A stretch of DNA of 41,801 nt from Lenisia limosa (lineage: Eukaryota; Protista; Breviatea): the NCBI GenBank assembly GCA_001655205.1, contig LPNZ01007350.1, positions 1 through 41,801 on the forward strand, in the 5' to 3' direction. Below are positions 5,128-34,001 of this stretch, one piece after another. The notes beneath the pieces are model-generated. The model ran no database searches, was not told where the DNA came from, and saw only the letters and a program-made list of their open reading frames with translations. The translations under genes were made by a program, and so were the position numbers. How positions within the stretch are numbered: position 1 is the first letter of the stretch; the number at the start of each line of letters is the position of its first letter.

Positions 5128-8100
5128 TCAGAAGAGGTTCACACGCTGAAAAGTAAGACTTTTTTTTACGGGCAGATGAAGCTTAACCACGTTGAACATA
5201 GATAGACACCCCTCCACCTTCTTCTCGTTCTGCTGCTTCCACTTGGCAAGCTTCTGGAATTCCTCTCTTGTCTTTCCGAAAACCTACACTCATTAGCCCA
5301 TACAGGGAAAAGCAAATGGGATATCAACAATCACCACCACCCTACGGTTTGGAATTCTGCATCAGATAAATAGGACTCCAAAGAAGTAACATCGCACCCG
5401 GCGGGCTTGCTGAGAAGCTGCTCGTAAGTGTAAGTAGTTTGGTTGGAGTCCTCCTTCTCTTCAACCTTTTCCTCAACCTTCTCTTCTTCCTTCTCTTCAA
5501 CCTTTTCTTCTTCCTTCTCCTCAACCTTCTCTTCTTCCTTCTCTTCAACCTTCTCTTCTTCCTTCTCCTCAACCTTCTCTTCAACCTTTTCTTCTTCCTT
5601 CTCCTCAACCTTTTCTTCTTCCTTCTCTTCAAACTTCTCTTCTTCCTTCTCCTCAACCTTTTCTTCTTCCTTCTCTTCTTCTTTCTCCTCTTCCTTCTCC
5701 TCAACCTTTTCTTCTTCCTTCTCTTCTTCTTTCTCCTCAACCTTTTCTTCTTCCTTCTCTTCAACCTTATCTTCTTCCTTCTCCTCAACCTTATCTTCAA
5801 CCTTTTCTTCCTCCTTCTTAACCTTCTCTTCTTCTGTTGTGCCTGAGGATTATGAGAAAATATTGTGTTGTCATGCAATAGAAAAAGTGCAAGCCAATTC
5901 ACAATCATAAGCCCCTCCCGCACCAGAGTTGAGAGTCCAGACTTTCACGGTTTCGACCAATTCGCTGCAGTGGTTCTGAGCAGCAGTGACCCAGGCGTCG
6001 GTAGCCTGGAAAAGTGACATCGACATTTCTGCTGACCCCTACGTACCAAAATAATTTTGGTGTAGATTATTAATATCTTGATCAAAGGTATTAATAGATA
6101 CAATTAATACCTCTCGCTCTCCCAGCCCACAGCAAGCTTCGGTAATTCAGGCATTTCCAGAGAAATCTCAACAAGGGCCTTGAAGGACTTATAACGGCCG
6201 TCGGCAAGGAAGGCAGTGATTTCACGGGTGCATTCATCGGGGCCTGTAGGGTGATGATTACAGCAGGTAAAGGAAGGGCCAACACAAACTGATGTCCTTT
6301 TCAAATGCAATAAAAGGGATGATCTTTCCAATCAACACACCACATCTTTACAGGGGAACACGCTGAGTATCATCATGAGTAGCCTACATTCTTCAAGCAG
6401 CACCTTGGCAGTGTCTCTCAGATGAAGAACACGGGTCTTTTCGTCCTTAATGACACCGTATTCGTCCTTGCTCACTGCCGCCCTGAGTACCTCGCGGAAG
6501 ACATGGGGGTGCTGGGGAGGGGATAAGGGAAGAAAGGACAACTTGAGATTCGCTTCAACAAAACACTAAGGCTAAATGGACAGGATTCATTGCGCATAGC
6601 ATACACACAAAGCATGCAGCAAATGCCCCCTACAATGGCACCAGCTCGGACAAGAAGCCTGGTGGAATCAGCGCAGCCTCTGAGAGCAGCGTAGAAGAGA
6701 GAGCTGCTACGTCCCTGAAGATGGTGAGTGCATGTTAAATGTTGTCAATAGAACCACCTTCGAGAGTTCACTCCCCCCCACCTCCAATTTGTCCATTTCC
6801 TCCGTCAAGGCCCCAGCATCAAGGAGAGCCTGTGTGGTCTCTTTTTGGTTATTGGCGGCAGCAGCCGTGAGAGGATGAACCTTCTGTAAGGGGTTAGGGC
6901 TAAGTGGACTGAAGGACCATGTTACCAATCAAGGCAGGGAAATACCCCCCACAGAGAAAGTGTCGAAATAGAGCTTGCCACCCTCGGCGATTCTCTCGTT
7001 AACTGCGGCAATTTCACCACGCATAGCGGCTCCGGCAAACTGCAAATCGTCCTAAGCCATATCAGTGACTGGGACTTAATATTCATGCATTGAAAATAAG
7101 AATGTTCTCATCAACACCGCCTCCCTCTTACGATAGAGGCGTAGACCTTCTCAATGATTTCCTTATGAATCTTGTTGAAGACAATGCGGTTCTAAGAAGT
7201 GACGGGAGAGGTACTCACTTGCCACCAAACATACAATACTGACTACTTCCAGTCCGTCAATAAATAAAATCGAAGTTAGCCCCTCTGTATGAGCTCACGT
7301 TTCTAGCGTCGTCGACACTTGCACCCGCCATGATAAGGGCCTCCATGATGATAGGGTGTCCGAGGATGGTTGCCGTGTGGAGAAGTGTCCGTTTCTGCTC
7401 AGTCATTGGATGGTGACCAATAATAAATCTCCGACAAATGAGCATGATTGCCCAGTAGAACTGCCATAACCCCCCCCCCCCACGGANNNNNNNNNNNNNN
7501 NNNNNNNNNNNNNNNNNNNNNNNNNNNNNNNNNNNNNNNNNNNNNNNNNNNNNNNNNNNNNNNNNNNNNCTCACAAGGAACGCATCGTAGTTATCAATGG
7601 CGTAGAACAGCGCAGCGCGACCCTTTAACATCAGCAAACTCGACATCGTCAAGCTCATGCGATGGAAAAAGGACAATGAAGGCATTCCAAATAAGGCAAG
7701 CGTACGTTTTTGTCTTTTGAGTTCACGTCCGCACCGGCAACAATGAGTTTCAACGCTGCCAAACGGTCTCCACTCATGACCGCGTGCAGGAGGGGGGTGT
7801 AGCCCTGGTGTCAGAAGATGCACGTTGAAATAAAAGCAACAATCTCTCAACAACCATGTCTAAGACTAGAAAAGCGACTGGAACAGCCTCCAAGCACACT
7901 CGCCCCAGCACACCTGGCTGTCTTGGATGTTGACATCTGCACCCGCATCAATGAGACGCATGACCACTTCGGCGCGGAAGTCGCCAAATTTCCTGTCTGC
8001 AGCTGCCTGACAAAGGGGTGTCTGAGCCTAGGTGTGTAATTGACGGCAAATATCTGACACCCTATGGATATGAACAACTATGGAGAGGCCCACCATCTTG

Positions 8101-23927: not shown

Positions 23928-26714
23928 TCATAAGAAAGCTTCGATCCGATCCTTGATCTCCCTCCTGCAACACGGGCACTTCTTGACCATTCTCGAACAT
24001 GGATAACAGGTACGAAGATGCCTGGAATTTTCAGATTCGGCATTCCAAATGCTTGATATCAAATCCGCAGACGACCTATTCTCCATCATAGGGTAATTCG
24101 AATACCAATAGCAATCACAACTCCCACCCACCTGCAGGGCAAGAATAGTGTGTTGGCAGGATCATCCATGCATATTACACAGGAAGCTGCAGGGGGCTCC
24201 TTGATTGGCTCTTGCTAAAGAGTCAGCTACTTTTCGAGGGGGAGGCTGGTTAACCTTCATTTGAGGCTGGTTAACTGTCATTCACTACAGCTTACCTCCT
24301 CTATTATAAGAGGCTTGGCAATGTGGTGTGAACAGCCGTATTCAAAACAGGTCAGCCCCTAAAGAATAATATTAAAAGTTCATTTTTTTGAACAATATGA
24401 GAGAAAATGTGAAAAATTCAACAAAACGACCACCAGAATATTAACCCCTTCTCACTTCCAAGTCAGTCTGCTGGGGGTCCGCACCCTCTTTGATGAGAAA
24501 CTTGACTGCATCATCATTACTGTAGGCACAAGCGTAATGTAGCAGGGTCCACCCCTTGAAGGTTAAAGGATCTAAAAACTATTTCAAAAGAGCAATAAAG
24601 TATCAGTTCATAGAACATAAAAAGTACTTCGATATTCGGAGGTACATACGAGATGAAGCATGTTCCTCATTATTATGAACCTTTATGCATCCCCCATCCC
24701 ACAGAGGTGAATAAAGAGTTAACAAACTCTTTGCAAAATGTACTCATAAAAGCAGCTAAATTTCCCTTACGCAGATACTGCAAGCAAGCAACCTAATAGG
24801 TCAAATCTGGTCAAAGAAATATCATTGTTAGTAGCAAATGATAGGGCAAATAAATAAATAAATTTAATAATATTACATCTATTAAGGATGGTGTGGACGG
24901 CTTCGGCCAGATATCTCTATATGGATATGATACTATATTATACCGCTTTCCGCGTACCAATGTACATAATATGTGATATAGCAACCCACCTGTGACTCTT
25001 GAGAGTAACAAGTAAGGTCATTAAAGAGGTCAAGTCTTTCAGTAGAAACTGGTACCTAAATGGTGACATAAATACTCCCAAAAAGTTCACACATAGGAAG
25101 AACCTAGACGAAGAAACCAAAGCCCATTGGCAAATTCAACCGTTTGTCTTACTTCAAGGTTGGCACCGAATTCCACCAGTAAATAAGGTAAAGAACCAAG
25201 AGCCCTCTCGGTATGATGTGACAGCATGTACTGGAGTGCTGTTTCACCCTAGATGCATGAGCACTTTTAATCTTCACCTCTGACCACCATCTGAACTGCA
25301 ATAGCACTGTCCCCTTAACAAAGGTATAATTATACCAATGAGAAATAAAAAACAAGGTTGTATCTGGCCAAAGCCGTCCAAACCATCACGCTTATAAGAG
25401 ATATGGAATTATAGTAAAATATTAATTCACCCAATCATTTGCCTTACAACTCTGCGCACAGCTTTCTGCGTGTCTCCCCAGCATACAGATAGTTATAATT
25501 CCACATCATTTGTACATATACCAAAATTTCACACAAATAAATGCGCTTGTCATTTATTTTGTTTTCTAGGTATGAAACACTCCACGTTACTTTTGCTTCA
25601 AACTCGATTTCAGCACCCTTCAAGAGGAGTGCACGGCATGTAGCTAGCTTTTCAACAGAGTCATGCTTACTAAACGCACTTGAGGCACAAGCAGAAAACA
25701 GTGCAGTCCACCCCGTCTAGAAGAATTATGTTTGCTCCCAGAAGGCCAAGGCAGCAGAAGGTGGAATTCAATCACATTCTTGAATTTCACTTTTGACTAA
25801 TGTTACAGACTTCAAAAACGATTGTCTAAGAGGATTTATCTAGAATATGGGAAACAAAGTAAAAAAGCACTGTGCAACACAATTGAGATGGGAAATAGAT
25901 AGCTGATAAACGGTACTCTTTTTGTAGCCGCAACTTGTGCGTAAAGCACGAGGGAAATGAGAAAAGGCGTGAATGGCTCGATATTTCACAGCTTAAGAAC
26001 ACCTTACTTTGTGCCCACATGGTCATTAATATCATCCACGTTGGCACCAAAGTGAATGAGCAGTTGGCAGTGGTGCACTCTTGATCGAAGGGATGCACAG
26101 ATCAGAGGGGTGCAGCCCTGTGAATATTATGCAGAGTTCAACATGGCTCGAACATGTTCGCTCTTTATGAACAAATCCACCACGGCTTCCAAAAGAATGA
26201 AGAGCCCCCTTAAAGCACCCATCTCACAATATCACAGGAGAAGCTTTCCCCTCGGCAATGTACGGCTGACGGATCCAACTCCAAAACCTCACGAAGACTT
26301 TCACAGGTACCGATGCTAGATGCTTTGATGATCACCTACGTTCTTAGAAAAGAAGAAAAAGATCACAGTGCAATGAATATTTGGAACACAAACGAGACAC
26401 CCAAGCCCTACATGAGGCGGAGTTGTCTGAGGCATTGTGTTTCTGGTGAACAACCTGGTCGTGTGACCAGACTACTGCATAACTACTCCCCGTGATTGGT
26501 CAGACTAGGTTGCGTACGGGGGGGGGGGGNNNNNNNNNNNNNNNNNNNNNNNNNNNNNNNNNNNNNNNNNNNNNNNNNNNNNNNNNNNNNNNNNNNNNNN
26601 NNNNNNNNNNNNNACGTTTGGGCAAACTGGTGGAGGATCCCAGCGACCATCGGAAGCTAGTAAGACGCAGGCGGGTTCAGAAGTGTTATGGTCGCTAAAA
26701 ACTTGGAAGTCCAT
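23928..26714 (-). CDS. Ankyrin-repeat plus C-terminal RING-HC (C3HC4, IAP/MGRN-like) E3 ubiquitin ligase; start codon tentative
   Basis: ANK exons GCTPLICASLR, TGWTALFSACA, GETALQYMLS and GGTLLHYACAY. RING: CVICMDDPANTLFLPCR|HLRTCYPCSRMVKKCPCCRREIKDRIEAFL* (TGA 23928-23930). Confidence 0.88.
24887..24922 (-). repeat. Repeat family A fragment (intronic)
   Basis: gatggtgtggacggcttcggccagatatctctatat is the family core. Confidence 0.65.
25331..25486 (+). mobile_element. Repeat family A near-full copy in an ankyrin-RING intron
   Basis: caatgagaaataaaaaacaaggttgtatctggccaaagccgtccaaaccatcacgcttataagagat...catttgccttacaactctgcgcacagctttctgcgtgtctccccagcatac is colinear with 39030-39188. Confidence 0.82.
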
Positions 26715-27185: not shown

Positions 27186-30100
27186 CTACTCTTCAAGCAT
27201 GCCCTTTGCAGCCATCATAGAAGCGACATCCTTCTTGGCGTCTCCAACAGGACGCACGCCGAAGTCCTGAACAGTCAAACGAGTGGTGTGAAGGAATGAT
27301 ATCCGAAAAAAGGAAAGAAAAGAAAACAAAGAACAATTGCCAAAAACAGTAGTGCTTGACTTAAACAACATACCTTGACGAGGATGTTGAGCACTTCGGG
27401 GCCGACAAAAGCAGGGAGCTGGGGACCAATGCGGATGGGCTTGATACCGAGAGCAAGGAGCTTAAGAAGGACGGCAACAGCTGCAAAGGTCAAGGGGGCA
27501 GATGACACTTATAAAACTCCAAGCCGAGCACATCATAGCCTACCCTTCTGTTCGAACCAGGACAGGACAATGGAGAGGGGAAGGTCGGACACTTCGCAAC
27601 CGAGGGCGCCGGCAAGGGCAAGGGCAACCATGACGGCTCCATATGAGTCGTTGCTGGGGGGGGGGGGGGNNNNNNNNNNNNNNNNNNNNNNNNNNNNNNN
27701 NNNNNNNNNNNNNNNNNNNNNNNNNNNNNNNNNNNNNNNNNNNNNNNNNNNNNNNNNNNNNNNNNNNNNNNNNNNNNNNNNNNNNNNNNNNNNNNNNNNN
27801 NNNNNNNNNNNNNNNNNNNNNNNNNNNNNNNNNNNNNNNNNNNNNNNNNNNNNNNNNNNNNNNNNNNNNNNNNNNNNNNNNNNNNNNNNNNNNNNNNNNN
27901 NNNNGGGGCTCAAAGGAGTGAGAATGAATAAAGAGGACAGCCACGATGCCAACCATTGTCCCATATCGAGGCAGCGGGGGATGCCGGTGTCACCAATGGT
28001 GTCGTAGTCCAAGTGGTTGACTCGGAACTTGCCGCATCCGAGGGTGAGAATCACAGCCTTCTCGGGAAGCTCCTTAGCCAACTCTGTGTAGTAGGATCGT
28101 TCACCTGGGGGGATGGTGAAAAAATTGACAGGGAAATCTACTCTATTGGCAAACTGATACACTGTGGTTGGAAATTGTAAACAATTAACTCTTCCCAAGA
28201 ATTGCAAAAGCAGGGAGGGGGTAGCGTTGTACAAACCTTCGTAGCCGTCACAACCGCCAATTAGGAAGAAGCGGGTAATCTCACCAGCCTTGACTGCGTC
28301 AAGGATGGTGCCTGTTGTGTCAAAGGAGGATGGCAAATGGTCCTAGTATCTTCAAACCAAGTTAATGGTCTCAGTTTGCCCCTCACCAGCGTTGGCGATA
28401 ATGAACTCGTGGCCGAAACCGGTGGTCAGCTTGGTGGGGCAAGGGTAGACCCTATATCGTGAGAATGGTTAAAGAAAAGTCTGGTTTCAACCGAAAAGGT
28501 GAAAAAAGAGTCCTTTAACAAAGCCTCATACTCGTCCTTAGGGTAAGCGAAGACCTTGTCTTCCTCAGTGAAACCCTTGAGCTCCTGAGCCTTGGCAATG
28601 ACGGGAGAAAAGTCGTGGAGGTTGCCCAGCTTGCCGGTGCCGTGGATGTGCTTCACGTTAGGCCAGGCAACAGCGCCTATTGAGGTTATTCTCGTCATGG
28701 GAAAGGTACTGATATAACAGTATAAAAAAACCACAGGCAGTCAGCTCACCAGCAGTGTACATTCTGTCGGCGTAGGGAGTCAGGACGGGGGTGAGGCAGT
28801 TGGTGGACATGATGATGGAGCCGGGGAAGTGAGTGAACTCGATTGCCTGTCTCTGCCATGCGGCGCCGTAGTGGCCGGCAAGATGCGGGTGGTCGCGGAG
28901 CTGGGGGTAGCCGAAGGCTAGACTTGTGTGAGAAGAGGTCTTTGCCAAAAGAATGCATCATTTTAGCCCCACAATTAGAGCAAGGCATTTGGATGGCTTA
29001 CCAGGAAGCATTTCACCGTGGGTGTAGACGTAGACGTCAGTGCCCTCACACTGCTTGAGAAGCTCACTCAACATCCACAGATCGTGACCGGAGAAGACAA
29101 TGCACTTGCCAGGACGGGGAACAACGGGAACCTGAGGGGGTTATATGATGCTACAGGGGAGGGGGGGGGGTAATCAGTTGTGAACCTACGGAATGGGGNN
29201 NNNNNNNNNNNNNNNNNNNNNNNNNNNNNNNNNNNNNNNNNNNNNNNNNNNNNNNNNGGGTTTGCCGAGGGTGGCGTTGGCATTGTAGAGGAGCTCGCCA
29301 GCAGTGAGGGTGGTCTTTCCAATCATGAGGGCCTTGGCGAGGACCTGAAACGGTTACATGGCTTCATCAATAGAGGAGCTTTGGATATAAGGCAAGTGCT
29401 CACCTGTCCAAGGTCGTCAGCAGCAGGGGTAAGGAGGAAGTGGAGCGCCTCTTGCATATTTTTGTAGATTTCGGGGTTTTCGTGGCCGAAGAGCAGAGCA
29501 TGGTCACTGAAAGGAGTGAGTCAACTGGCTCAAGTATAACTGTGGTTTTATGAATTAAAGAGTTCACGGCCTACCTGTAAGCGGAGAGACCCTTGATGCC
29601 GTAGATGATGAGCTCCTGAGCACCGACAAGAGAGTCGTTGTAGAGCTCACGCATGCGCTCGAGGATGGACACTTCAGCTCCGAGTGCGGCAAGCTCCTCA
29701 ACCTACAATATCAGCAAGGACAATCGCAATAATCAGATTCACTGTAATTGAAAAGGCCTCCATCTGCTGACCTCATCGGAAGGAATGGAGAGCTCGTCAT
29801 GGCTGAGAGGGCACACGGGGACGTCAACGCCCTTGGCCTTGCAGACCTTAGTGAGACGCTCCTCAGCGGCCTTGGTGAACTTGTTGATGCGGCGCACGTA
29901 GTCTGGTGGAGGGGGGGGGGGGNNNNNNNNNNNNNNNNNNNNNNNNNNNNNNNNNNNNNNNNNNNNNNNNNNNNNNNNNNNNNNNNNNNNNNNNNNNNNN
30001 NNNNNNNNNNNNNNNNNNNNNNNNNACATCAAAAGCACGCACGCACCAATGATGCGGCCTTCGTCGAAGTTGACGTTGGTGAGGGTGGCGAAAGCGGCTT

Positions 30101-33100
30101 CCATAGTCAGGCGGTTGGCGTCAGCGTCTTCAGCAAGAGGGTCAGCAGGCTGCTAACGTGAGCAAAATGTTTAACATGCAATTTTAGACGAAAATACTAT
30201 ACCCCCTCACGTCGGCGATCTGTCTGATCTCGGTAGCGAACCATCCGAGGGCCTTGCAGTGGTGGATCAAGAGATCCTGGAGCTGGGCAACAGTGGGGGT
30301 CTTACCGCAAACACCGGTCTGGTATGTAAATACCATTTTTATTTGGTTTAGGATTCAATCAGAAGCATGAAAGAAGGCAATAATATAAAAAAAAAAATAA
30401 CGAAACGAGTACCCCCCCCCCCTAACAGTGACACAACCGGTTCCATTTTGGGTCTGCTCGCACTGGTAGCAAAGCATCTGGGCGTCGGGGTTGGCGTCAG
30501 CGAAAGTCTTGATGTTGGCACCTTCAGCCTTGGTACCGCGCTCTGTGTCGTCAAAATAGAGATAATATCTGGTCGAAACCGTCCATTTGAAAGGACAACA
30601 AAAGCAATTAACAATATAAGATGGCTCACTGGTCTTGCCGGTAACAAGAGCCTCTTCCTCAGCATCCTTGGAGTAGGCTTCAACAACCATGCGGCCGTTT
30701 TGGCGCATCTTGCGTAGCATGGCGCGAGCGCGAAGACGAGTCCATCCCTAACATGGTAAGCTCCCATGCTATTCACTTGAAGAGCTGTTTTACGCAAATC
30801 AATGGAGGAGTGATTCGATATACCTCAGACTCCTGGAGAGACTTACGGACGGTTTCCTCAACATGACGGGGAATGGCACCACCGAGTCCGCTGGAGAGTT
30901 AGCATTGATTCAAGAGAATACATGATATCATATAATATATATATATCATATACACTTTTGGGATTTATCAAGACTAACCAGTACACGTAGGCACCCTCGC
31001 CGCCGGCAACAGCAGCAGAAACCTTCTTGGGGTTGGCAGTGATGGCATCAGTGATCTATGATCGGTCATATTTGACAATTGAAAGAAGATAATGAGAGCA
31101 ATAGAACAGAAAGGATAAAGAGAGAAAAAAGCGCTCCGTACTCTGATCTTGTCCTCGTCACGAGAGGCAGCAACGGTAATGTCGACAAGGCCGTCCTTCT
31201 GGAACTGCTCAAGCTCATCAACGTAGAGGTAGGTGGAAGCCTTGCGCTTAATGCCGAAGAAAAGAGTCACGAGGGCGACCTTCTGGCCAGCAGCCTTGGC
31301 AGCCTGACGGTCCTGTGGAGTCAGACACTTCCACAAAACAATAAAAAAAAAACACAAAAGATGCTAACACGCCATTCAAAAGTGTAGACCCCCCTCTCGA
31401 ACCTGGATGATAGAGCGCATGACACCGATAGCGGAACCGATGGCAAGAGCACAGACGGGAACCTCAGGGGCAGGGAGAGTCACACCGGGCATAGCTCTGG
31501 CAATCATCTTCTCGCCGGCTGCGGGGGTGAGAAGCATGATGGGTTGCGAGTTTAGTTCATTTCATATAAAAATCTTCCGACTTCCGATAAATGTCCTCCT
31601 ACCCTTAAGGTTGGCAATGTAGTTGGAGCAGAGGCCGACACGCTTGCCGTCAGCGGATTTGTCAACAGAAACGCAGAGGTCAATGTTCTGAGAAACCTGG
31701 GAGAGGGGGTGAAATCGGAAGATTCTCAATGTGAAACTTTGAAACGTTGAAACCAGCCCAAACCTTAGGGGAAGAGGCAATGGAGTAGTAGCGAGGAACA
31801 ACGCGAGGAAGAACGGTCATGGCCTGAGCTAGGACGGGTAAGAATGCCAATAGCAACAAAGTAACCAAGCACGAACTAACCGATGGTAATGTTGATAGAA
31901 GGGTACTCCTCAAGGATGGTCATGATGGAGAAGTTGGAGCGCATGCGGAGAGCGTACTCCTAGTGGGTTAGTAAACATTTCTTAAACGCTACCTGTTCTT
32001 GGCAATTATTAAACAGACAAGTGACCTCCTGAGGAAATATCAATCCAAGCCTACACTTTCCTTGCCGGTGGTGGTGGAGAGCTTCATGAGAGCAGCAGCC
32101 TCCTTGGCATCAGAAGCGACAATAGAGAAGCCCTCAAGAAGAGAACGGCTAAGAGGTCGGTTAAAGCACAAAAGGGCACGTATAGAAGACTCACAAACAT
32201 ACAACCAATCCAAAACATGCAGTGAAGCTCACCTTGGAGCGGCGGAGACGTCAAGGATGTGTGTGAAAACGTCGCGAGCCTGGACATGAGCAGGGGTCTT
32301 GGGCGCATCGTCNNNNNNNNNNNNNNNNNNNNNNNNNNNNNNNNNNNNNNNNNNNNNNNNNNNNNNNNNNNNNNNNNNNNNNNNNNNNNNNNNNNNNNNN
32401 NNNNNNNNNNNNNNNNNNNNNNNNNNNNNNNNNNNNNNNNNNNNNNNNNNNNNNNNNNNNNNNNNNNNNNNNNNNNNNNNNNNNNNNNNNAGTGTCACTA
32501 GTATGGTGTTCAGCCAACCTGAGTGGCATCGACAGCAAAGCGCTTGCAGGCACGGTCAACAACCTCCTTGGGGACCTCAGGGAAGACCTCAACATAGCCG
32601 CCGAGGGCGTACTTGCTGGGGGGTGGGGGGTAAATGAAGCGCACAAATTCACACTCCATCAGGAAGACAAGTTAAGAACAGCCCATATCAGATTATCTGT
32701 TAACTCTTTCAGAAAGACATTGAAAGAGTAACTGACTGGTCACATACAGTCAATGTGCACAAGCCTACCCGTCAGCCTTGAGAGTGATGTTGACGGAAAC
32801 GTCTTCGAAGTCCTCAGTGGTCATGTTGGTGTTGGCAACAACCTCCATGAGGCCCTTCTCCACAGGCCCGTTGTAGGCCCTAGTATAGTTAGTTACACAT
32901 GAACATAAAAGGAAAAGAAAAACAAATGAATATTTTATAACAGCCATCTCTTCATGTCAAAGCAAGATTCCCCTTCAATTCCCCAAATTCAGACAAAACA
33001 GAAGAAGGCAAGAGAAGAGAAGGAGGAAAGAGGAGCCAACATACTTGGCACCATCTTTTTTCTTGAAGTTGAAGCTGCAGGGAAGAGATCCCTTGCCTTC

Positions 33101-34001
33101 AGAAGCGCCAAGAGCAGTCCAGAGCTCGTTGAGCCAGGGCTGGAGAGCAGCATCATGACTAAAACGTCAAAGAGACTGAACAAAAATAACTGAAGATTAA
33201 AGTTACAGGCAATCAATTCAGTCCAAAAATGCAGTCACTTAATTGACAGAAGGATGATCAGTTGGCAAAAATTTCAAGGCTTGGAGGGCCACCCACCCTC
33301 CATCAGCAAGCTCATCACCGAAGCCAGTAGGAACGAGAAGGTTAGCGCCCTTGGAGGTCATGTGATGCTGGAGGTCCTGGAAAGGTGAGTAAAGTCGGGA
33401 AATGGGAAGTCAGAACAAACCTTAGCAGCTTTGTTAAACTCAGGAGAGTTAGAAGCTCCAAGTCCAAAGATACCGCACTTGACATCCTTAAGCTCATCGT
33501 TGGTAAGAGCAGGGAAGGAGTGGAAGAAGTCCTAAGAAATTAGTCGGGCTATCTGCATAACTTCCGTTTCTTACGAATGCGTTGGCAGGAGGTTCACCAT
33601 TGCCGAAGGTAGAAGTCAACACGATGATGAGCTTCTCTGAGGAAAGGTCCTAAAGAGTGAACATTCTGGGAACTGGAAAACCAATCACCTATCGGACCAA
33701 ATCTCTTTCCCAACACATTGTATATGAACAGTTAATTCTCAAACCTTGGCACTAATATCTTTCAAGTCAATGCATCGGACGTCGAAGTTGCGGAGAGAAG
33801 CTGAGACTGCGACACCCTTAGCGAGAGCAGCAGCAGTTCCAGTTTGTGATCCGTAGCAGACAAGGAGAGGTGTAGACCTAAATAAGCTGTTAGAGAAGGA
33901 ATACAATAGAAATGGACCATGTCCGCGGTACAACTAAGGGTGATCCGTTAAATGTAAAGTACACAAAGAATTATTGAAGGATCCCACACAACAGCTTACA
34001 T
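27186..34001 (-). CDS. hcp: Fusion protein: diflavin reductase (flavodoxin + FAD-binding + NAD(P)H-binding, CPR/CysJ-like) followed by a class I hybrid cluster protein (prismane); ~34 exons
   Basis: Flavodoxin: [29 protein letters not shown] domain: [20 protein letters not shown] domain: [29 protein letters not shown]: [91 protein letters not shown]. Stop TAG 27186-27188. Confidence 0.95.

Follow-up and report, generated by a model that had tools for sequence, protein, structure and literature searches.

A single-chain diflavin reductase-hybrid cluster protein fusion predicted from an intron-rich gene of Lenisia limosa

Analysis of a 41,801-nucleotide stretch of the Lenisia limosa genome (Breviatea; contig LPNZ01007350.1 of assembly GCA_001655205.1, positions 1 to 41,801; hereafter the window) was carried out on a minus-strand locus that, in our judgement, is with good probability one intron-rich nuclear eukaryotic gene for a soluble and probably cytosolic protein of ~1181 amino acids, an NADPH-driven diflavin reductase fused to a hybrid cluster protein (HCP) that would reduce nitric oxide (NO) or hydroxylamine (NH2OH). 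As read from the sequence, the N-terminal 560 residues form a predicted diflavin reductase of the type seen in cytochrome P450 reductase (CPR) and P450 BM3, a linker of 35 residues follows, and the C-terminal 584 residues make up a complete HCP. The novelty implied when the locus was first described from sequence alone (hereafter the original prediction) was not borne out, since proteins of this architecture are widespread in the public data; database entries had been allowed for in that description. The value of the finding lies in the family, to which the window adds a divergent member that is rich in introns and whose junction of the two halves is supported by RNA.

Gene structure and domain order

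A profile built from 70 full-length homologues was used for protein-to-DNA spliced alignment and the resulting model was curated by eye. The coding region runs from 34001 to 27186 on the minus strand in 34 exons and 33 introns and closes with a TAG stop codon (27188-27186). Both ends can be seen for 32 introns, all of which are bounded by GT..AG, and in the 33rd the GT donor is seen while the 3' end falls inside an assembly gap. Intron length has a median of 84 nt and a range of 43–165 nt (30 introns that contain no gap), donors mostly read GTNNG, and a TNAY branch-like motif is found ~10–20 nt 5' of the AG. GC content is 56% in exons and 40% in introns. Comparison of the introns of the fusion gene with one another revealed no copies, meaning that they are not introner-like. 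The curated model contains no internal stop, and its product consists of 241 amino acids, ~14 unread residues and a further 926 amino acids.

Pfam searches of stop-free pieces on the minus strand resulted in matches to Flavodoxin_1 at 33742-33933 and 33497-33649, to FAD_binding_1 at 31683-31919 and to Prismane on five collinear pieces (30187-30354, 28661-28957, 28429-28740, 27905-28342 and 27278-27508). Three of the Prismane pieces singly exceed the 27-bit cut-off with 49.1, 66.2 and 29.8 bits, the first two scores belonging to 28661-28957 (49 bits) and 27905-28342 (66 bits). With decreasing coordinate the families follow one another as flavodoxin, FAD and then HCP. The 34-exon model, this Pfam order and collinearity with ~75 homologues together bear out the original prediction of ~34 GT-AG exons in one frame that encode flavodoxin, FAD-binding, NADP-binding, linker and HCP segments.

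The start codon is proposed to be split by the first intron, with AT at 34001-34000, an intron at 33999-33878 (GTAAGC...CTAAC...TAG) and G at 33877 on the minus strand, as read from the sequence; no in-frame ATG is found upstream in exon 2. From this putative start the N-terminus carries neither a presequence nor a membrane anchor. When left unspliced, the ATG at this position runs straight into TAA.

The junction between the two halves is free of gaps and spliced in RNA

The exon at 30747-30630 closes with ...GRMVVEAYS, the FAD-stacking aromatic motif, followed by the start of the linker. The 35-residue linker (30669 to 30478, minus strand) spans the intron 30629-30543, and the exon at 30542-30427 encodes the remainder of the linker and the start of the HCP half. 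Since the intron is 87 nt long, in frame and free of stops, the two halves share one frame whether it is spliced or not. No assembly gap is present between 30026 and 32312. The linker start is conserved in the fused family as EAYS[KR]D..E[ND]AL.

For RNA evidence, a polyA library sequenced in the same study as the DNA (a "metatranscriptomic" run) was used. A spliced contig of 382 nt (depth 2.8) was recovered that covers 31191 to 30473 of the minus strand in five pieces (31191-31142, 31055-30979, 30890-30823, 30746-30630 and 30542-30473). The contig removes four introns, at 31141-31056, 30978-30891, 30823-30748 and 30629-30543, with GT..AG at four of four joints. The locus is transcribed and spliced, and splicing connects the last exon of the reductase with the one where the HCP begins. 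The description of the junction as robust, with its in-frame, stop-free intron and gap-free surroundings, was upheld by both the sequence and this RNA contig. In the weakly conserved linker region the profile on its own had placed introns at 30823-30709 and 30645-30541; these were misplaced, and the RNA-supported introns 30823-30748 and 30629-30543 were used instead.

The fused architecture is found across eukaryotes

A search of 1.84 billion representative proteins was performed with an HCP piece as the query. Among the best matches were seven clusters (50% identity, 1186–1235 aa) in which the HCP match lies at the C-terminus, and all seven carry Flavodoxin_1, FAD_binding_1 (+NAD_binding_1) and Prismane. 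With the best of these clusters, P0001, as the query, ~75 full-length proteins with the same domain order were retrieved. P0001 itself is a single open reading frame (ORF) of 3606 nt on a 4880-nt contig, and several fused homologues are complete ORFs in transcriptome assemblies (MMETSP and TRINITY names).

Going by the names given at the source, the fused proteins occur in fungi (Basidiobolus, Polychytrium, Podochytrium, an entry labelled Siphonaria, Gonapodya and Hyaloraphidium), in ichthyosporeans (Sphaeroforma and an entry with a Creolimax-type identifier) and in oomycetes of the Saprolegniales (Aphanomyces, Saprolegnia, Achlya and Thraustotheca). Others come from Chromera velia, the pelagophyte Chrysophaeum, an entry with a Cyanophora-type identifier and a likely transcript of the diplonemid Hemistasia, as well as from many MMETSP and metagenome-derived sequences. 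The source names of the proteins are "hydroxylamine reductase" or "hybrid cluster protein". In the searchable literature, the only mention found was a footnote to a review table on a fusion in Cyanophora. The fused architecture is thus already known from databases, and the gene in the window is, as judged from sequence comparison, a new, divergent and intron-rich member of an uncharacterised family.

Residues 5–1176 of the window protein align to residues 8–1192 of a 1197-aa Basidiobolus protein, and similarly end to end with more than 20 others. Identity to the fused homologues is 40–43% overall, with best values of 55% for the HCP half and 36% for the reductase half. As no closer protein was found in the representative search, the lineage of the window seems to be unrepresented there. 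The uncharacterised entries (~1160–1280 aa) include those of Basidiobolus meristosporus, Sphaeroforma arctica (SARC_07729), Saprolegnia parasitica (SPRG_00616), Chromera velia (A0A0G4IEB6), Gonapodya prolifera, Chrysophaeum taylorii and the Cyanophora-type entry tig00000882_g5263. They share with the window protein the domain order, the position and length of the linker, end-to-end alignment and membership of the same clades in both halves. The window protein differs from them in its 33 introns, its deep separate branch and its lack of a presequence, which some marine members possess as a targeting-like N-terminal extension of ~80 aa.

Phylogenies were calculated separately for the two halves, and a fused clade was obtained in both. 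In the HCP tree, the fused proteins, the window model and four module-loss variants lie on one side of a branch with an SH-aLRT support of 97 (IQ-TREE, LG+C20 quick search) and FastTree support of 96–99; immediately outside this group stands the alveolate Alphamonas edax with an unfused HCP. In the reductase tree (FastTree only), a branch with a support of 100 divides the fused proteins from free CPR, NDOR1 and CysJ, and the reductase half of the window falls on the fused side on a long branch (1.12). Except for one Aphanomyces fragment, the free reductase relatives that were found share less than ~30% identity. The window protein is a deep, divergent branch of the fused family. Reductase and HCP halves each group as one clade, a pattern that would fit a single fusion event followed by spread among eukaryotes.

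Cofactor sites of the reductase half

In order to assign cofactor sites, the window protein was aligned with plant CPRs, one CysJ and five fused homologues. The FMN (flavodoxin) domain is encoded by exons 2–6 (33877 to 33045, minus strand), as identified by Flavodoxin_1 and by alignment with CPR, CysJ and the fused homologues. It contains the motifs YGSQTGT (33855-33835) and FGLGASN (33468-33448) and, between them, a 10-residue motif (33616-33587). Both the T/S-x-T-G-T loop and the aromatic-Gly-x-G-E/D-P loop expected for FMN are present in the alignment. The connecting and FAD-binding domain, supported by FAD_binding_1 and alignment, is encoded by exons 7–13 (32879 to 31603, minus strand) and includes the gap 32313-32490. 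Its R-x-Y-S and G-x-x-S/T motifs are present as RYYSIASS (31793-31770, within PRYYSIASS) and GLCSNY (31636-31619), while ~14 residues of the connecting domain are unread.

The predicted NADP(H)-binding domain is encoded by exons 14–18 (31518 to 30670, minus strand) and was delimited by alignment with plant CPRs and CysJ. A Ser-Arg pair (AASRDE) stands at the 2'-phosphate site of CPR and is accompanied by VYCGLGG. The C-terminal stacking aromatic residue lies in VVEAYS (30687-30670, minus strand), with EAY where CPR has DVW. The NADP(H) piece of the window gave no match to the Pfam family NAD_binding_1, to which the homologues match weakly.

The best match of the reductase half of P0001 in the Protein Data Bank (PDB) was the BM3 reductase, with CPR also near. 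The fused homologues scored 164–199 bits against the cysJ equivalog TIGR01931, far under its cut-off of 668. On account of these two results, the "sulfite reductase" label carried by the N-terminal half is an annotation artefact.

Cluster ligands of the HCP half

The HCP half (30477 to 27189, minus strand; 584 aa) is encoded by exons 19–34 and was identified by the Prismane matches and by HCPs in the PDB. The fused homologues reach 549–652 bits against the hydroxylamine reductase equivalogs, for which the cut-offs are 361–367 (TIGR01703, NF003658; Pfam PF03063). The four-cysteine cubane motif C-x2-C-x8-C-x5-C, as originally described, is confirmed in the spliced model, where it extends from 30471 to 30307 on the minus strand and is split by the intron 30426-30319, so that its fourth cysteine is encoded in the exon 30318-30211.

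Alignment with the Desulfovibrio vulgaris enzyme (1E2U) showed that all seven ligands of the hybrid cluster are present on the minus strand. These are His244 in SGHDL (29092-29078), Glu268 in HGEML (29020-29006), Cys312 in STNCL (28807-28793), Cys406 in GGCDG (28258-28244), Cys434 in LGCGK (28042-28028), Cys459 in MGQ-C-ND (27964-27647) and Glu494 in WFEQK (27559-27545). The seven short motifs listed in the original prediction (GHD, GEM, TNC, GCD, GCG, GQC and EQK) correspond to these ligands. For GQC a correction is required: Cys459 is present, with its codon TG/C split across a gap-bearing intron, and its presence depends on the splice across the gap 27670-27904.

Class II HCPs have the cubane motif C-x2-C-x11-C-x6-C, and the insertion has been proposed as the docking site of the reductase Hcr. 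The 3+1 extra residues of the Escherichia coli class II protein do not occur in the fused family, as seen on comparison of a close homologue with 7DE4. The class I label given previously therefore stands as far as the cysteine spacing and the absent insertion are concerned; by overall score, however, the HCP half of the closest relative is slightly nearer to class II, matching E. coli (7DE4) with 471 bits and class I D. vulgaris with 422 bits.

Assembly gaps within the gene

The window holds 15 runs of N, four of which fall within the gene. A public DNA run was found to contain all sampled words of the stretch, and an 8299-nt contig from it bridges three of the four gene gaps. The gap 29199-29257 in exon 25 is really 3 nt long (AGT on the plus strand) and in frame; once filled, the frame continues past NATLGKPTPHS in agreement with the family consensus. 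The gap 29923-30025 is really 47 nt and lies within the intron 30046-29903 (GTGCGT donor, CAG acceptor), the removal of which yields the expected conserved Asp from the split codon G/AC. The gap 32313-32490 is really 85 nt and takes in the 3' end of an intron together with ~14 unread codons from the connecting domain, its flanks matching family positions ~14 residues apart. The fourth gap (27670-27904) was left unbridged and lies within the intron 27953-27654 (GTTGGC donor, poly-C followed by a CAG acceptor), the flanks of which (DMGQ-TG / C-AAC-GAC) rebuild the conserved GQ-C-ND of Cys459.

The lengths of the bridged gaps are overestimated in the assembly (59 versus 3, 103 versus 47 and 178 versus 85 nt). 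On the plus strand a poly-G run directly precedes each of the inspected gaps 26530-26613, 27670-27904, 29923-30025 and 32313-32490, a pattern suggestive of trouble with homopolymers during sequencing or assembly. A separate G11 run is located inside the intron 30426-30319 on the minus strand.

Proposed electron path and comparison with known systems

In CPR, BM3, NO synthase (NOS) and sulfite reductase, electrons pass from NADPH to FAD, from FAD to FMN and on to an acceptor. Activities reported for bacterial HCPs are the reduction of NO to N2O and of hydroxylamine to ammonia. By analogy with these systems, NADPH would donate a hydride to FAD in the reductase half and FAD would pass single electrons to FMN. 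The mobile FMN domain would then swing on its hinge to the [4Fe-4S] cubane near the N-terminus of the HCP half, and the 35-residue linker would tether this end of the HCP half to the end of the NADP(H) domain. From the cubane, electrons would reach the [4Fe-2S-2O] hybrid cluster, where NO would be reduced to N2O and/or NH2OH to ammonia. A chain running from NADPH through FAD, FMN and [4Fe-4S] to the hybrid cluster is likely, being the natural reading of the domain and motif content. The preference for NADPH, the substrate and the cellular location of the fused protein are predicted on the same footing.

A variant nested in the fused clade, P0002 (756 aa), consists of a presequence, an FMN domain, a linker and the HCP and is devoid of the FAD/NADP module. 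Since it retains the FMN domain only, it fits a role of FMN as the direct donor to the HCP. Extended to the whole family, the proposal would be that a eukaryote-wide family of single origin, of which the gene in the window is the most divergent member seen, acts as a self-sufficient NADPH:NO (or NH2OH) reductase with the flavodoxin-like FMN domain as direct physiological donor to a class-I-type HCP cubane. We advance this wider proposal tentatively, its chances falling a little short of even. If it is true, flavodoxin becomes a candidate for the long-missing donor of stand-alone class I HCPs, and the flavodoxin-HCP variant an intermediate that draws on a separate reductase.

A functional likeness is seen to Hcp-Hcr of E. 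coli, where a pyridine-nucleotide-driven reductase also feeds an HCP cubane and, through it, a hybrid cluster, the HCPs being homologous (7DE4). There, however, the reductase is the separate NADH oxidoreductase Hcr, whereas the fusion lacks the class II insertion and its donor is probably NADPH. Hcr is, moreover, an FAD/[2Fe-2S] protein and not a diflavin reductase (PMC10210160). Class I HCPs of D. vulgaris and Methanothermococcus (1E2U, 8CNR) have the same cubane spacing and the same seven ligands; they stand alone, whereas the window protein has a covalently attached donor module. The electron donor of class I HCPs was stated to be unknown in a 2023 paper (PMC10210160).

P450 BM3 (CYP102A1) and NOS resemble the fusion in that a CPR-type FMN/FAD/NADPH module feeds a fused metallo-catalytic domain. 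In both, the catalytic domain is N-terminal and adjoins FMN, with the reductase at residues 468–1031 and 861–1453, respectively (8DME, 9Q05). In the fusion protein the reductase is instead N-terminal, the catalytic domain lies C-terminal of the NADP(H) domain and the acceptor is an Fe-S cluster rather than a haem. The reverse order relative to NOS and P450 BM3, as originally described, is thereby confirmed. CysJ/CysI is similar in that an Fe-S-containing multi-electron reductase, acting on a small inorganic substrate of the N/S-oxyanion type, receives its electrons from a diflavin reductase, and this likeness accounts for the automatic "sulfite reductase" naming of the N-terminal half. Its components are separate chains, and the fused homologues, with cysJ scores far below cut-off, stand apart from it in the tree.

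As a natural covalent fusion, the family may serve as a "Rosetta stone" that suggests an HCP driven by NADPH through FMN in many aerobic or facultative eukaryotes. It reaches fungi, ichthyosporeans, oomycetes (including pathogens of fish and crops), chromerids and marine algae, and bears on NO detoxification and N2O production in eukaryotes. As the fused enzyme needs no partner, assays should be simpler with it than with HCPs that stand alone.

Alternative explanations

Several observations weigh against the reading of the locus as a self-sufficient NADPH-driven reductase. The reductase half is strongly divergent, with a best identity of 36%, and its NADP loop reads AIGSAIGV where relatives have GSGIGV and CPR has GTGLAP. 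The ~14 residues in the gap 32313-32490 are unread and no contig spans the gap 27670-27904. The DNA run whose contig bridges the other three gaps is probably the assembly's own data, given that it contains all sampled words of the stretch, and is in that case not independent of the assembly. The RNA evidence consists of a single contig of low depth (2.8x) that ends 5 nt into the HCP coding part; by itself it covers the junction and not an mRNA through the whole HCP half, and it lies elsewhere than the putative split start codon. Furthermore, no biochemical work on a diflavin-HCP fusion was found in the searchable literature.

The alternative that fares best accepts the fusion and assigns it a chemistry other than NO or hydroxylamine detoxification, such as NADPH-driven protein S-nitrosylation/denitrosylation signalling, peroxide reduction, nitrogen assimilation or anaerobic redox balance. 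The physiological role of HCPs is debated and several activities have been proposed (PMC10210160, PMC8003979, PMC13632651), and nothing in the window indicates a particular substrate. The active-site ligands nonetheless match, without exception, those of enzymes for which reduction of NH2OH and NO has been measured, and no extra domain is present that would suggest another substrate. We therefore regard a different chemistry as unlikely.

Slightly less likely still is that the diflavin reductase and the HCP are made as free proteins from the locus, whether in place of the fusion or in addition to it. Such products could arise if transcription began at an internal promoter, if polyadenylation were alternative, or if translation started internally at the conserved Met of MLCYQC. 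This Met before the first cubane cysteine is conserved in all fused homologues as if an ancestral start had been kept, and two variants inside the fused clade, P0218 and P0220, have the ~78-aa presequence and the linker of 1240-aa fused relatives without the reductase; the end of the RNA contig early in the HCP part would also agree with separate products. P0218 and P0220 look like cases of secondary module loss or isoforms. Against separate products, there is no stop between the halves, spliced or unspliced, splicing of the 87-nt intron leads into the exon where the HCP starts, the linker start is conserved, and full-length fused ORFs occur in transcriptomes of other species.

That unrelated genes were fused artificially, during assembly or whole-genome amplification, is very improbable. 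In favour of such a chimera, the assembly is fragmented, with its many N gaps each preceded by poly-G where checked, the runs are small (47–71 million letters) and the genome set includes bacterial contigs. Against it, the junction is gap-free, strand and frame are unchanged from one side to the other and its position coincides exactly with the domain ends; splicing over the junction is seen in independent RNA, the same join is found in ~75 homologues of other organisms and both halves place the protein in the same family.

Further observations on variants, splicing and the window

The ORF of the flavodoxin-HCP variant P0002 is intronless and present in at least three tandem copies, in units of 2833 nt with 97–99% identity. 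The array is found in ENA ERZ21831265 on ctg65710l (L001/L002/L003), for example at L002:49-7984.

Other fusions of the HCP were seen among the matches (P0222, P0227, P0229 and P0244). They comprise proteins of ~704–727 aa in which an HD domain (PF01966) is joined to the HCP, and a 909-aa protein that combines hemerythrin-like domains (PF01814, PF04282 and PF13596) with the HCP.

At intron 7 (32616-32768), an in-frame segment contiguous with the next exon could substitute for the adopted segment, to which it is similar in length and in a strand-like pattern. This alternative splice (donor/acceptor ~32801/~32654) is in frame and was not adopted, having scored 5.6 bits lower with the hidden Markov model of the family and having weaker splice signals.

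An Rfam scan of the whole window gave no match. Elsewhere in the window, positions 5342-5923 hold a low-complexity repeat that gives FSSS/TFSS repeats when read on the plus strand and a long run of K/R (KKRLRRRKK...) when read on the minus strand.

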